DNA of 64,000 nucleotides, taken from Heteronotia binoei (lineage: Eukaryota). The notes beneath the pieces were generated by a model, which worked only from the letters and a program-made list of their open reading frames with translations, had not been told where the DNA came from and did not search any database. Positions 53,780 to 63,037 of this stretch are shown here, piece after piece. The position numbers were made by a program, and so were the translations under genes. Each line of letters starts with the position of its first letter. The stretch's first letter is position 1. The stretch covers positions 24,180,001 to 24,244,000 of the forward strand of contig NC_083227.1 of NCBI RefSeq assembly GCF_032191835.1, read 5' to 3'.

Positions 53780-54202
53780 ATGGCAGAGCAGGATCCAGAA
53801 GGACCTGGAACTAGCAAAGGAACAAAGAAAAGCCTCCGTCCTATCCAGGCTCAGAGTGGTGCTGAATTCTGGGAAAGAGCTGCCCCAGAGATCCTGACTC
53901 AGGAAACGATGATCCCAAGTGTGCGTTGCCAACGCTTCCGGCAGTTCCGTTATCATGAGGCTGCTGGGCCCCAAGAGGTTTGCAGCCAGCTCCATGAGCT
54001 TTGCAACCGCTGGCTGAAGCCGGAGAAGCACAACAAGAAGCAGATCCTGGACCTGGTGATCCTGGAGCAGTTCCTGGCCATCCTGCCCCCGGAGATGGCA
54101 AGCTGGGTCAGAGGGTGCGGGCCAGATACCAGTTCCCAGGCAGTGGCCCTGGCCAAAGGTTTCCTCCTGAGCCAGGCAGAGAAGAAGAGGCAGGCAGAGC
54201 AG
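53780..54202 (+). CDS. Gene D (SCAN-KRAB-ZF-hAT fusion), SCAN exon, 141 codons
   Basis: MAEQDPEG...RCQRFRQFRYHEAAGPQEVCSQLHELCNRWLKPEKHNKKQILDLVILEQFLAILPPEM; CAG|GTGAGG donor. Confidence 0.9.
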
Positions 54203-54445
54203 GTGAGGGGGTTTCCTTTGCTTACTTCAAGCAACGACCTCATCCTAAGGATTCCCTCCCAAATACTTCTACCTCTGGAAAAATCACTATGCTTCGAAGA
54301 AAGCTCAACCCTAATTCTTGACCCTGTGGTTGAAGCAGCTCTGCTGGTCGATGCAGGAGCGTGAAAGAGCATTGGAGTGGGCAGGATCCATCTCCTTGGC
54401 CTGTTTTATTTCTTCTCTCACCCATCTCTCTTGCTGCTGTTTCAG

Positions 54446-54560
54446 ATGTGGGGACCATCCGTGAATATGGAAGCTGAGTGCTCTGAGGCAGAAGGAGCTC
54501 CACTGGAGGAACAGCAGAGGACGCAGGCCCAGGAGTGTGCCCAAGATGCCGTCTCACATG
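54446..54560 (+). CDS. Gene D linker exon, 115 nt
   Basis: TTTCAG acceptor, G|GTAAGG donor, phase 0 to 1. Confidence 0.8.
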
Positions 54561-55085
54561 GTAAGGGTGCCTTGAGCCTGGATGGGATTACGGCACCCCA
54601 TGAAACTGATGGGTAGAAGGGTTCAGGTCGGTAAGGAAGGAAAATAATTTTGCGCACAGCAAGAGAAACCATACTTCTGTGACATCATTTCCACATACTC
54701 TCCTTTCTTCCCAGAAGCCCGGACACAATGGGGGGTTGGAGAGGGAGCTACTGGTAGGAGAAAGGCATGTCTCAGCCTTTGATCTGCTCTAACAGGGATG
54801 CTGTCCTATTTTTGAGCCCTGGAGTTCACAGAGCACATTTCAAGTCGCACAGAAGTCTGAAAGACATTGACAGCATTTATAACCCCTTGAGACTCATGAA
54901 TACCTGCCGCTTCTCTTCCACCTCTCTTGCAGTTTACTAAAAATCATTGTAATATTTTTTTTGGCATGTAGATAGGGTTTTCCTGCCTGCAATTCTGCTT
55001 TGCAAGAAGCAGTATTCAGACAAGCAAACGAAACAGGAAGTCAAGGCTAGTGATACCTCCTCTTCCACTTTTCTTTCCCTTACAG

Positions 55086-55156
55086 ACAGTGGAGAGATGC
55101 TGTTGAGCCGTTGTCGTTGCAGAGGTGTGGAAATGACTTCCGTGCGTCCAATCCGG
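55086..55156 (+). CDS. Gene D short linker exon, 71 nt
   Basis: TTCCCTTACAG acceptor, CGG|GTAGG donor, phase 1 to 0; restores frame into KRAB-A. Confidence 0.65.
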
Positions 55157-59163: not shown

Positions 59164-59313
59164 AGGTATCCTTAAATTCTGGATATTCCAGAGAAAGAAG
59201 GAATGTTTCCCAGGAACAAATTCCCTTAGGAGAGAAACTATGTAATTGCTTAGATTGTGAAAAGACCTTCAGTTGGAAAATGGCCCTTAGTTCAAATCAA
59301 AGGATTCCCTCAG
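59164..59313 (+). CDS. Candidate gene D internal exon, 150 nt, with one degenerate zinc finger
   Basis: GEKLCNCLDCEKTFSWKMALSSNQRIPSG; CTTTAG acceptor and CAG|GTGAGG donor, phase 1 to 1. Confidence 0.45.
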
Positions 59314-59324
59314 GTGAGGAGTGA

Positions 59325-60159
59325 TAGCAGTTGGCCCCCTTCCTGGAGCGCCGTGACCTAGCAATGGTGATCCATGCTACGGTCACCTCGAGACTGGATT
59401 ACTGCAACGCCCTCTACATGGGGCTGCCCTTGAGCCGAACTCGGCGGCTGCAGCTGGTGCAGAACGCGGTGGCTAGGCTGTTGTTGGGGCTCCCAAGGTG
59501 GGAGCACATACAGCCAGGGCTACGCGGACTGCACTGGCTGCCAGTGGTATACAGAGTTCATTACAAAGTGCTGGTTATCACCTTTAAAGCCCTATATGGT
59601 CGAGGACCTGCCTACCTGAGGGACCGTCTCTCCCCATATGAGCCCCTGAGAGCGCTGAGGTCAGCTGGAAAAAACCAGCTGAATATCCCTGGGCCAAGGG
59701 AGGCCAGATTGAAGGCCACCCGGGATCGGGCCTTCTCTATTGCAGCTCCACTGCTGTGGAATCAACTCCCAGAGGAGGTACGGGCCCTACGATGCTTAGA
59801 TCAATTCCGTAGGGCCTGTAAGACCCACCTCTTCAAAATAGCCTTCAACTAACGACAAGCTAGGAAGTGCCGTTGAAAATGCTTTTAGTTACTGAATTCT
59901 ATTGAAGATCTAATGTTTATAGCACCATATTGTTAATGTTAATTTTAATATAATCTGTAATTTGTTTTAACCATGATTTTATAAGTATAACTCGATGTAT
60001 AATGTATTTTTATGCTGTGAGCCGCCCTGAGCCTGCCTTGGCAGGGAGGGCGGGATAGAAATATAAAGTTGTTGTTGTTGTTATTATTATTATTATTATT
60101 ATTATTATTATTATTATTATTATTATTATTATTATTATTATTATTATTATTATTATTAT
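59325..60159 (+). mobile_element. 5'-truncated L2 LINE with a (GTT)n(ATT)n tail
   Basis: Open 173 aa ORF2 C-terminus (TSRLDYCNALY...LQLVQNAVAR...LHWLPV...RAFSIAAPLLWNQLP). Confidence 0.9.
60068..60159. repeat. (GTT)n(ATT)n microsatellite
   Basis: Direct reading; tail of the L2 copy. Confidence 0.95.
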
Positions 60160-60341
60160 AGAAATCATCAGTGTGCAAAGCAAGCCTCTCTGATGCAGCA
60201 GGATTTTCAATTGTCCATTTTCGGTACACTTCAAAGTGCAGCAAAAAGAAACTCTAGAAATGTTACAAATGTGAATAGATATTCAAGCGCAGATCAGACC
60301 TCCTTGTGTGGGAGCTAATAGGATCTTTGTCTTTATTCCAG

Positions 60342-63037
60342 CAGGGGATGATCAAGGGAATGAGGACGACGAGGAACTGCGTCATCTGTTGCCAGGTGAA
60401 ATCAGATATGAAGACGTGAAAAGAAGCCTCAGGAATCAAGATGGATCCAAGAGGCAGAAAAGGAGCCACGTGGTTGAGAAGAGTGGCAAAACCATTCCTT
60501 GCCCAAGGGGGGTTTTCTGTGAAGCAATTCACATGATGGAGGAAACATACAAATGCTTGGAGTGTGGAATGAACTTCTCAGATCAGTCCCAATATCACGT
60601 GCATTTGACAATACATCCTGAAAAGAAGACCCATCATTGCTTGGAGTGTGGAAAGAAGTTCAGGTACAGATCGCAGCTCCTTAAGCATCAAAGAACCCAC
60701 ACGGGGGAGAAACCTTTTGAATGCACAGTATGCAGAAAGAGCTTCAGTTGGAGCGGCAATCTTCACCAGCATGAAAGAACCCACACAGGACAGAAACCAG
60801 ATAGCTGCTTAGACCACGGCCAGAGCCTCCCACAGAAATCAGGCCTTTGTCAACACCAAAGGATTCACTCAGGAGAGACGCCGTTTATTTGCTCAGAGAA
60901 TGGATCGACACTCTCAACAGGTAACGAGAATACAGATTTGAGCTCACAGACTGAAACAAGTGAGTCTGGGACTTCTGCTGCAGCCTCTGAAGTCACGGAA
61001 AGCTCATGGCCCAGTTGCTGGACTGTGGAACAGAAAGATAGATTTTTGGAAAAAAACAATTGGTTGTTTTTTTGTGACGCCAAGTTGGGTTGCTCCGTGT
61101 GCAAAAAGATGAGAGGTTTAGAAGGAAAGAAAACTGGAGCGATACGGCTTTCCAGAGAATGGGTAAAATGTTCGGTAACACCATATGGTGACAGCAGGAA
61201 GCAGCAATTAACATCTCTGAGGAAAAAGATTTTTGAACACAGAGAAAGCGGTAATCATAAAGCTGCAGTTAAAATACTTGAAAAGGGGAAAAAACAAAGG
61301 CCCGTAAAAGCAGGTCATCCGTCACTAGAAAGTGAGGAAGAAATCACCAGTAAAGTGTTCCGTACTGTATATAAGTTGGCAAAAAGCAACCAGCCATTTA
61401 ATGATTTTGAAAGTGAAATTGATTTACAAGAATTAAATGGCGTCGACATGGGGACAATGTGGCATTCAGCTAATGCGTGTATAAATATTTTAAATCACAT
61501 TGGCCGTGAAATGAGACGTCTGGTGATCGGAAAGATTATCGACTCAAGGAGTAAAATCTCACTGATAATTGAGGAATCCACTACTGTGAGTCAGGAATCT
61601 GTACTGTTAGTGTACATTCGTACCTACATGAAGGAAATAGGCATGCCAGCCCCTGCAAATCTCTTCATCGCCTTGATGGAGCTGGAAGATGTGACGGCAA
61701 ATGGAATATTCAGCACTTTGATGTCTCAGCTTGAGTCGCTAGGGTTCACTGAAGATTTTCTTAAGGAAAACTTAGTTTCGTTGACCAGTGATGGTGCCGC
61801 AGTGTTGCTGGGATCCCGCGGAGGGGTTTTGAGACTTCTCAAAGATAGATTCCCTGCCGTTGTTTTATGGCATTGTGCCAGCCATCGGCTGGAATTATCA
61901 GTACATGATGTTGTGAGAGAGGTTTCTGGCATCAATAGAGTGCGAGATTTTTTGGACAAATTGTACGTTGTGTATCATACGTCTCTGAAACACGCAAGGG
62001 AGCTCAACTCATGTGCAGCTGCACTCGAGACGGAGATTTTAAAAATAGGAAGGGTTCTTTCCACCAGTTGGGTTGCATCCAGCTACAGGACCGTTTTGGC
62101 CGTCTGGCAGGATTACAAAGCCTTAGTGCTTCATTTGGGAAAAGGCAGATCACAAGGAGGGAGAGGCGGAAAGGGGGAAAGCACGTACGAGGGTCTTCAT
62201 AGAATGATGACGTCGGTTGATTTTATTTTGGAACTTGGGTTGTTTTGTGACACTTTGCAAGAGCTGTCGGAACTGAGTTTAGATTTGCAGGAGAGAAACA
62301 TCGATATGTACAAGGCCCACTGCAAGATTGAGTGTGTTCTTGATGTTTGTAGGCTGAGAAGCACCGCTCCAGGTCCTTATTACAAGGAAGCACTTGAAGC
62401 GGCAGAAAGTCTTCAGTTTAAGGGTGTCCCATTGCGTAAAAATAATAGAGCCGACAACCCACCAATCTCCCCAGTTGTATTCTACGATCAACTTAAAATT
62501 TCTCTTCAGAAAAGACTGCTTTCGGAAGAAGATGTAAACCTGTCAAAGTGTGCGAGAGTCCTGGATTCTGAGACTTGGCCGACAAGCATTAGGGACAACC
62601 CTCTCTTCGGAGAAGAAGAAATACGGACGTTGGCAGGAAGATTTCGGCTCGGTGAAAGAGAAGCCGTTAGAGCCTTCAGGGGCCATCTGAAATTGAGAAA
62701 AGGAGTGCCCAAGGAACTGGCTCAGATTCAGCACACTCTCAATACAATAGCCATTTCCTCCAGCGAGTGTGCAAGGGGATTTTCCCAGATGAACCTGATT
62801 GCCACCCCAGAAAGGTCCTCCTTGTCGATCGAAACACTGCAGAATTTATTATTTATCAGAATGGTCGGACCTCCCTTAACGGGCTTCAACCCAACGTACT
62901 ATGTTAGAAAGTGGTTGCTTCAAGGTCATCAGCCTGCCTTATCGACCCAAAGCGAGGACCAGAAAAGAACAGAAGTAACGGGTGACCTGTCACCATTTTG
63001 GGAACTTTTGGAGGGATTGTCCTCATCAAATGATTGA
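60342..63037 (+). CDS. Gene D last exon: spacer, 3 intact C2H2 fingers + 1 degenerate finger, in frame with a KIAA1586-like hAT transposase-derived region
   Basis: TTATTCCAG|CAG acceptor, phase 1. WPSCWT...WLF...LGCSVC...H...H TTF-type Zn module; IIEEST, TSDGA, HCASHRLEL, STSWVASS and SSECARGFS hAT motifs; 2.7 kb without a stop. Confidence 0.9.

Follow-up and report, generated by a model that had tools for sequence, protein, structure and literature searches.

In tetrapods, 94 independent host-transposase fusions have been catalogued, and in all cases the host and transposase parts lie in separate exons (Cosby et al., bioRxiv 10.1101/2020.05.07.082677). Table S3 of that study includes ZNF862, a mammalian protein with a KRAB domain and a hAT transposase (dN/dS 0.09, 180-312 million years); KIAA1586, a eutherian hAT derivative (dN/dS 0.03, 100-150 million years); and KMARD3a/b of Anolis, the host part of which is given as "KRAB, SCAN, ZF_C2H2 (x4)" and is combined with a mariner transposase (bioRxiv 10.1101/2020.05.07.082677). 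The gene described here is located on the plus strand of a 64,000-nucleotide stretch of the genome of the gecko Heteronotia binoei (NC_083227.1, positions 24,180,001 to 24,244,000), which is termed the window and in whose numbering coordinates are given unless another locus is named. Its product comprises a SCAN domain, a KRAB A box, three intact C2H2 zinc fingers, and a region derived from a hAT transposase, the last two encoded by one exon. Taken together, the data indicate that this is probably a host-transposase fusion gene of H. binoei that is transcribed and maintained by selection, with a transposase that is catalytically disabled.

The nearest reviewed relative of the transposase part is KIAA1586 (Q9HCI6); the alignment (E 2e-44) spans the whole region with 724 residues, of which 31% are identical. 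A preliminary description of the window had already named KIAA1586 as a related protein. Both genes lack terminal inverted repeats (TIRs) and belong to the same hAT subgroup. KIAA1586 has, however, no SCAN domain, KRAB domain, or C2H2 array, and the gecko gene is independent, comes from another element lineage, and evolves with a dN/dS ratio (omega) of ~0.39 as compared with 0.03. ZNF862 (O60290) combines KRAB with a hAT transposase of the same broad subgroup and is the second-best structural match (23% identity), but it lacks SCAN and a C2H2 array, captured its transposase by splicing, and arose independently. Similar to the Heteronotia protein, KMARD3a/b of Anolis carolinensis, also a squamate, have KRAB, SCAN, C2H2 fingers, and a transposase. 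The differences are that this transposase is of the Tc1/mariner type (Mariner-2_Acar) rather than hAT, is a separate exon joined by splicing, and is young, being 93% identical to the element consensus. In SCAND3/ZBED9 and PGBD1, a SCAN domain precedes the transposase part, and SCAND3 is a hAT structural match (E 2e-15), but KRAB and C2H2 domains are missing, the elements are different, and the domains are spliced together.

In the lizard Elgaria multicarinata webbii, the C-terminal portion of a predicted protein of 1903 residues (P0103; L005, 30676-46330) consists of SCAN, KRAB, four C2H2 fingers, and hAT. Its domains follow the same order as in Heteronotia, and it may be a further squamate fusion; its hAT part is of another family (motif LAIDETTD) and is encoded by an exon of its own, 6.6 kb beyond the finger exon. 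The preliminary description had called the Heteronotia architecture unusual, which is correct for the placement of fingers and transposase in one exon, unlike the 94 catalogued fusions, but not for the domain combination, for which KMARD3a/b, ZNF862, and the Elgaria protein are precedents. What is new is this gene, its hAT family, and the join inside a coding exon; the domain combination is not. A literature search returned no paper on the Heteronotia fusion gene, nor on KIAA1586 as a hAT transposase.

Gene structure and transcription

The coding sequence of the protein (P0001) was rebuilt on the window from six exons, and all internal borders have canonical GT donors and AG acceptors. The small 5′ coding exon (51993-52009), which consists of the ATG and 14 further nucleotides and has a GT donor, comes from the RefSeq model and is optional, as an in-frame ATG at 53780 would also serve. 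The SCAN-domain exon (53722-54202, or 53780-54202 from the internal ATG) has AG and GT borders and matches Pfam SCAN with an E value of 4.5e-38. Two linker exons of 115 nucleotides (54446-54560) and 71 nucleotides (55086-55156) were placed by the coding-sequence reconstruction. They are followed by the 127-nucleotide exon of the KRAB A box (55639-55765), which matches positions 1-42 of the 42-position Pfam KRAB profile (E 1.5e-22) and has no B-box exon after it. The terminal exon (60342-63037) contains a linker, the zinc fingers, and the hAT transposase region in one frame with the stop codon at its end, as supported by the open reading frame (ORF), the reconstruction, and RNA. The intact ORF itself spans 909 amino acids (60308-63037). 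Downstream, an AATAAA at 63155-63160 is the likely polyadenylation signal, and an RNA contig reaches 63120. The succession of SCAN, KRAB A box, and tandem C2H2 fingers detected by Pfam is the layout of a SCAN-KRAB C2H2 zinc-finger (ZNF) gene, with the array cut to three intact fingers.

The preliminary description had proposed an in-frame spliced chimera of SCAN, KRAB-A, three C2H2 fingers, and ~700 residues of hAT transposase. The six GT-AG exons, the Pfam matches, and the ORF show this chimera to be real; the ATG at 53780 is the start chosen there, and the proposed exon lengths (423, 115, 71, 127, and 2693 nucleotides) and total of 1143 amino acids agree exactly with the reconstruction. The gene had also been presented as a candidate new fusion, but it is already in databases: the exon set, from 51993-52009 through 60342-63037, exactly reproduces RefSeq XP_060093811.1, a protein of 1168 amino acids that was found 100% identical in a protein search with the C-terminal 700 residues as query. 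Its precomputed domains are SCAN, KRAB, C2H2, and a hAT RNase-like domain, and its transposase domain is in frame with the host domains in an annotated gene, as in fusions of the kind catalogued by Cosby et al. The fusion gene is present in databases as an annotated model, but is undescribed, and the RefSeq name, "E3 SUMO-protein ligase KIAA1586-like [Heteronotia binoei]", conceals its real architecture.

Within the terminal exon, the three intact C2H2 fingers (60548-60784; individually 60548-60616, 60632-60700, and 60716-60784) match Pfam zf-C2H2 and zf-H2C2_2. Next to them are a degenerate fourth finger (60800-60868), with His in place of the second Cys, and the remains of a fifth, a stub of 12 residues (60869-60904); both were read from the sequence and align to fingers of the paralogue P0115. 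The host-derived sequence ends at 60904, and the transposase-derived part begins at ~60905. The transposase is in the same exon as, and 3′ of, a retained short C2H2 array, as had been proposed, and the whole of 60342-63037 is contiguous. Because the fingers and the transposase are contiguous both in DNA and in an RNA contig (60685-61172), they are not the separate, spliced exons that host-transposase fusions otherwise show.

RNA was examined over 60250-64000 in the raw reads of two runs and in two contig sets, with ~6% of each run read. Contigs of run X2, from the same organism, cover 60344-60583, 60685-61172, 61175-61540, 61755-62029, 62324-62613, and 62615-63120 at an even depth of 5-7, and the second of these crosses the finger-transposase junction. 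The first ends at the splice acceptor (60344), and 227 of its 467 nucleotides are unmatched, as expected for spliced mRNA. Raw reads are sparse, yet present in nearly all bins. The fusion gene is transcribed, and the end of transcripts before ~60900 that had been considered as a ground for rejecting it is not observed, the X2 contigs running from 60344 to 63120. In run X5, from a second organism of the same study, contigs are 2-3.5% diverged over four parts of the transposase region, and among the differences listed for the four runs none is an indel inside the ORF. A contig of the second organism at 60699-60917 was considered as a bridge over the junction and rejected, as it extends just 13 nucleotides beyond it.

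A read peak at 60628-60753 reflects cross-mapping from paralogous fingers. At 90% likeness, no multi-copy RNA pile-up is present on the transposase part, unlike the multi-copy repeat at 63274-63777, which each of the four RNA runs represents strongly and with numerous variants and indels. The adjoining 63778-64000 has zero depth in every run, perhaps through filtering. In raw run X7, reads at 62088-62139 contain at least four linked differences per 100 nucleotides, indicating expression of the same gene from a divergent allele or lineage. The name H. binoei covers a complex of species that includes hybrid parthenogens.

The hAT-derived region

The transposase-derived region (60905-63034, ~710 amino acids) is delimited by protein and DNA alignments with copies from the geckos Eublepharis and Gekko, together with a Hermes-like fold and the relationship to KIAA1586. 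Pfam applied to this sequence alone gives only a hATC match below the cut-off (PF05699, E 0.033), and the assignment to hAT is therefore taken from homologues, profile, and fold. A protein search found 81 homologues, most of which are stand-alone proteins of ~730 amino acids with the hAT domains PF27073, PF14291, and PF05699. A profile of 26 family members aligns to residues 547-601 of Hermes, the C-terminal dimerisation motif, with E values of 3e-6 to 5e-6. The AlphaFold2 model of the transposase part (predicted local distance difference test score, pLDDT, 78) has an RNase H-like core interrupted by an all-α insertion domain, as in Hermes, and its 12 best matches in the PDB are all Hermes (E 7.5e-10 to 2.8e-7, probability 1.00). 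The best solved structures (4D1Q, 8SJD, and 2BW3) reach E 7.5e-10 and a template-modelling score by target of up to 0.63. The differences are that Hermes is active, with TIRs and an intact DDE (Asp-Asp-Glu) triad, and that sequence identity is 12-14%. Among reviewed proteins, a structure search places KIAA1586 nearest to the model, then ZNF862, ZMYM1, ZBED5, FAM200A/B/C, SCAND3, and ZMYM6. Membership in the hAT superfamily is confirmed at the level of homologous sequences and predicted fold.

Motifs were compared in a family alignment of 25 relatives, in which 151 columns are conserved at ≥90% in the 21 non-gecko relatives. The transposase's own N-terminal zinc finger, a CxxC...HxxxxxH motif at 61091-61258 that is its presumed DNA-binding domain, keeps all four of the nearly invariant ligands (C67, C70, H116, and H122), with pLDDT values of 84-88. 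At the C terminus, the hAT dimerisation-type region that gives the Hermes profile match (62738-62917) keeps the invariant GPP and W. The catalytic residues fare differently. The first catalytic Asp, which is D in 25/25 relatives and sits on strand β1 of the RNase H-like core in the model, is Glu in Heteronotia (61571-61573). The second (61790-61792; motif TSDGAA) is kept, as the nearly invariant D300 of the segment directly after strand β4. The catalytic Glu, which is E in 25/25 relatives and which the profile alignment places on Hermes E572, is Ala (62771-62773; CARGFS in place of the family CERGFS). Two of the three catalytic residues are lost, and the intact DDE triad of an active hAT transposon is absent.

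Overall, Heteronotia keeps 139 of the 151 conserved columns (92%), and the number changed (12) compares with 9 in Eublepharis and 20 and 11 in the Gekko copies. Two of these 12 are catalytic columns; by our own calculation, the chance that 12 random changes among 151 columns would include at least two of the three catalytic ones is ~0.018. Also missing from the source element are the initial ~36 codons and everything 5′ of them, including the 5′ untranslated region. As the preliminary description had stated, no TIRs surround the transposase: an inverted-repeat search gave no credible pair flanking it, only short, low-complexity, or chance pairs. The outcome was the same around the Eublepharis and both Gekko copies, and no TIR sequence of the source hAT family could be recovered. 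With two catalytic residues, the N-terminal ~36 residues, and the terminal repeats lost, the protein should no longer be able to cut DNA or to move. It is the single member of this transposase family found among Heteronotia proteins in the protein search. Sensitive tblastn revealed no other hAT relics in the window apart from marginal matches (E 0.3-0.7) of two family members to the C-terminal hAT motif region at 41456-41707 on the plus strand, possibly a remnant of great age that adjoins a further finger exon.

Gecko relatives and the origin of the junction

In the family tree, the Heteronotia and Eublepharis sequences and two stand-alone single-exon ORFs of Gekko japonicus form a gecko clade (support 100/99). 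This clade is nested among element-like proteins of firefly, snail, turtle, caecilian, lizards, and fishes. The order within it is unresolved, and the Heteronotia branch is the longer, at 0.36 versus 0.13 for Eublepharis. The nearest neighbours of the clade are a firefly (Abscondita) protein and a protein of metagenomic source; snail, coral, turtle, caecilian, and fishes are also represented in the family, and this patchy species spread suggests horizontal transfer of the hAT family. The two Gekko copies (L001, 10001-12217; L002, 10001-12220) are 84% identical in DNA, both intact (dS 0.32, omega ~0.42), and without TIRs. An acceptor-like TTTTGCAG is conserved in both, 46 nucleotides upstream of the ATG; according to Cosby et al. 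(bioRxiv 10.1101/2020.05.07.082677), transposons show such a site upstream of the transposase ORF. Within 10 kb upstream of the Gekko copies there are no KRAB or SCAN exons, and these copies are either old subfamilies of the element or themselves domesticated.

The sequences closest to the transposase part are XP_054834514/5 of Eublepharis macularius (KIAA1586-like X1/X2), with 67-68% amino acid identity. Like the Heteronotia transposase, this one is joined to KRAB in a ZNF cluster (L004, 32508-42630; GCA_028583425.1, CM053280.1), with KRAB exons at 32.5-34.4 kb and a last exon (39905-42145) that encodes a complete transposase. The two genes differ in host gene, junction, and catalysis: the 52 kb examined in Eublepharis contain no SCAN, a splice acceptor ~12 nucleotides upstream of the start-codon position of the element adds the complete transposase, and the full catalytic triad is kept. 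A C2H2 array (L004, 42314-42630) begins 170 nucleotides past the Eublepharis stop codon. The fusion has its start in common with another gene model, of 779 amino acids, and it looks as though parental and fusion transcripts coexist. A host gene common to both fusions was rejected given the lack of SCAN, the other junction, and the fingers downstream of the stop, and the Eublepharis gene probably captured this hAT family independently.

For the host half of the Heteronotia protein, the nearest relatives are ordinary SCAN-KRAB-ZNF proteins of Paroedura, Sphaerodactylus, and Heteronotia (57-63% identical), from all of which the transposase is absent. A full-length HMMER search of 1.84 billion representatives, the results of which were dominated by zinc-finger proteins, showed no second protein with both halves. 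At least four paralogues are present in the window and its flank. SCAN-ZNF paralogues are clustered on the minus strand (2839-3114, 12989-13973, 18466-19587, 30204-30587, 39594-41078, and 45472-45771), and a same-strand tandem paralogue, with a SCAN exon 78% identical in protein, begins 6.6 kb downstream (L003, 27611-28525). Over the 6.5 kb from the Heteronotia stop codon to this next paralogue, no finger remnants were found. The last intron contains a decayed C2H2 fragment (59142-59324), a 173-residue ORF (59331-59852) that resembles a retroelement fragment and has no Pfam match, and, directly upstream of the last-exon acceptor, a long AAT/ATT microsatellite (~59990-60200).

The Heteronotia junction formed at the DNA level inside finger 5 and not by splicing, possibly through insertion and deletion or through deletion between neighbours. 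An alternative is the same product with another history, in which a stand-alone domesticated gecko hAT gene was later joined to a SCAN-KRAB-ZNF neighbour by deletion. Such a gene-gene fusion would account for the lack of recognisable TIRs in all four gecko copies, for their being intact with the same omega (~0.37) despite mutual dS values of 0.3-0.8, and for the two Gekko ORFs, which are single-exon and stand-alone and only 84% identical to each other in DNA. The full catalytic triad of the Gekko and Eublepharis copies speaks for an element instead, as do the ~730-residue element-like proteins that surround the clade in a patchy, mobile-family pattern and the acceptor-like site upstream of the Gekko ORFs. 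In addition, the gene tree departs from the species tree, placing Heteronotia nearer to Eublepharis than to Gekko. On these grounds, a fusion of two host genes is considered unlikely, although it is the most probable of the alternatives.

A more ambitious version of the favoured reading is that one hAT family was captured at least twice independently by gecko KRAB-ZNF genes, by splicing in Eublepharis and by an exon-internal, in-frame DNA join in Heteronotia, and that the latter is the first documented fusion born inside a coding exon as well as a dual-specificity repressor. We put this forward tentatively, as a reading that is rather unlikely. If true, the host fingers and the transposase zinc finger would read different DNA sites, wiring relics of the protein's own family into a KRAB-controlled network.

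Constraint on the frame and proposed function

Selection was assessed on the 666 codons shared by the gecko copies, which are non-orthologous. Pairwise dN/dS is 0.26-0.46, depending on the method. In a self-written codon model of the Goldman-Yang type, omega is 0.39 on the Heteronotia branch, 0.36 on that of Eublepharis, 0.42 and 0.39 on those of the Gekko copies, and 0.31 on the internal branch; a single ratio for all branches (0.37) is not rejected. Fixing omega at 1 on the Heteronotia branch costs 16.4 log-likelihood units and is rejected (likelihood-ratio statistic 32.9, p = 1e-8). The preliminary description had noted a frame free of stops and frameshifts, and this observation is upheld and strengthened by the rejection of neutrality. 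In neutral simulations of the same 666 codons, fewer than 5% of trials remain stop-free beyond ~0.04 substitutions per site, and none at 0.2. The dS of the Heteronotia branch, obtained by least squares from pairwise values, is ~0.35. A frame that is open at this dS, compared with a neutral tolerance of ~0.04, implies that at most a small final part of the branch was neutral. These results support a transposase frame that is maintained by selection rather than by chance.

Several points weigh against a maintained fusion gene that acts through KRAB. RNA depth is low (~1-7 reads), and the joint between the KRAB exon and the last exon, which lies outside 60250-64000, is deduced from the contig that stops at the acceptor. 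In the KRAB box, a usual D is replaced by E and a usual L by R at positions important for TRIM28 binding in human KRAB domains, so that repression is not assured. No syntenic orthologue was found in a species more than 50 million years distant, and the constraint rests on a branch that perhaps includes the time of the active element. An omega of 0.39 is also high for an old domesticated gene, given the 0.03 of KIAA1586 and the 0.09 of ZNF862. Finally, the allelic differences listed in the transposase part (at least 13) comprise 7 non-synonymous and 6 synonymous changes, a suggestive but non-significant ratio that is compatible with an omega of ~0.4.

In the reading that we favour, a member of the tandem SCAN-KRAB-C2H2 cluster lost most of its finger array, and its last exon carries in frame, instead, a KIAA1586-type hAT transposase in which the fold, the N-terminal zinc finger, and the C-terminal dimerisation region are all preserved. 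Either the three C2H2 fingers or the transposase zinc finger could bind DNA, or the two together, and multimerisation could occur through SCAN and the hAT dimer interface. Recruitment of a co-repressor by KRAB-A would then make the protein a sequence-specific repressor, which is its most likely role judging from domain content, and it may plausibly target remnants of the hAT family to which it belongs. The preliminary description had proposed a lineage-specific repressor that could recognise the ends of cognate hAT elements and miniature elements (MITEs).

The same components could serve to regulate transposition and not host genes, with a catalytically dead transposase that dimerises, binds element ends, and poisons or silences active copies of its family, and with KRAB adding heterochromatin. 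Conservation of the dimerisation region and the transposase zinc finger alongside the loss of catalysis is in keeping with this role, and transposons are established targets of KRAB-ZNF genes (Cosby et al., bioRxiv 10.1101/2020.05.07.082677). Among Heteronotia proteins, however, no active or recently active member of the family was seen, and such a regulator would be a special case of the favoured explanation rather than a true alternative; as an account of its own, it is distinctly unlikely. The least probable account, a functionless accident in which insertion or deletion brought a hAT copy into the finger exon of a redundant gene in a large SCAN-KRAB-ZNF cluster and truncated that gene, with a frame open only because the event is recent and a transcript that the host promoter drives although the transposase tail serves no purpose, draws on the fast turnover of ZNF clusters and their tolerance of broken members (at least four paralogues here), the low expression, the missing distant orthologue, and an equal omega on all four gecko branches that could be the signature of the element's active life, but a recent insertion is hard to reconcile with the absence of TIRs, target duplication, and downstream fingers, the small neutral tolerance of the frame, the change of two of three catalytic residues amid 92% conservation, the lack of another intact family member among Heteronotia proteins and of a multi-copy RNA pile-up, and the diverged copy without a listed indel that a second organism expresses.

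The Heteronotia gene is a real but not unprecedented recruitment of a transposase into a transcription factor. New transcription factors are known to arise through host-transposase fusions, and this gene adds a squamate hAT example with signs of domestication, namely targeted catalytic loss, a conserved fold, transcription, and an omega below 1. It also points to a birth route that is missing from the tetrapod survey, a join within a coding exon that left part of the host finger array ahead of the transposase. The Heteronotia and Eublepharis genes lend themselves to a paired comparison of how function is shaped by the capture route and by whether catalysis is kept or lost.

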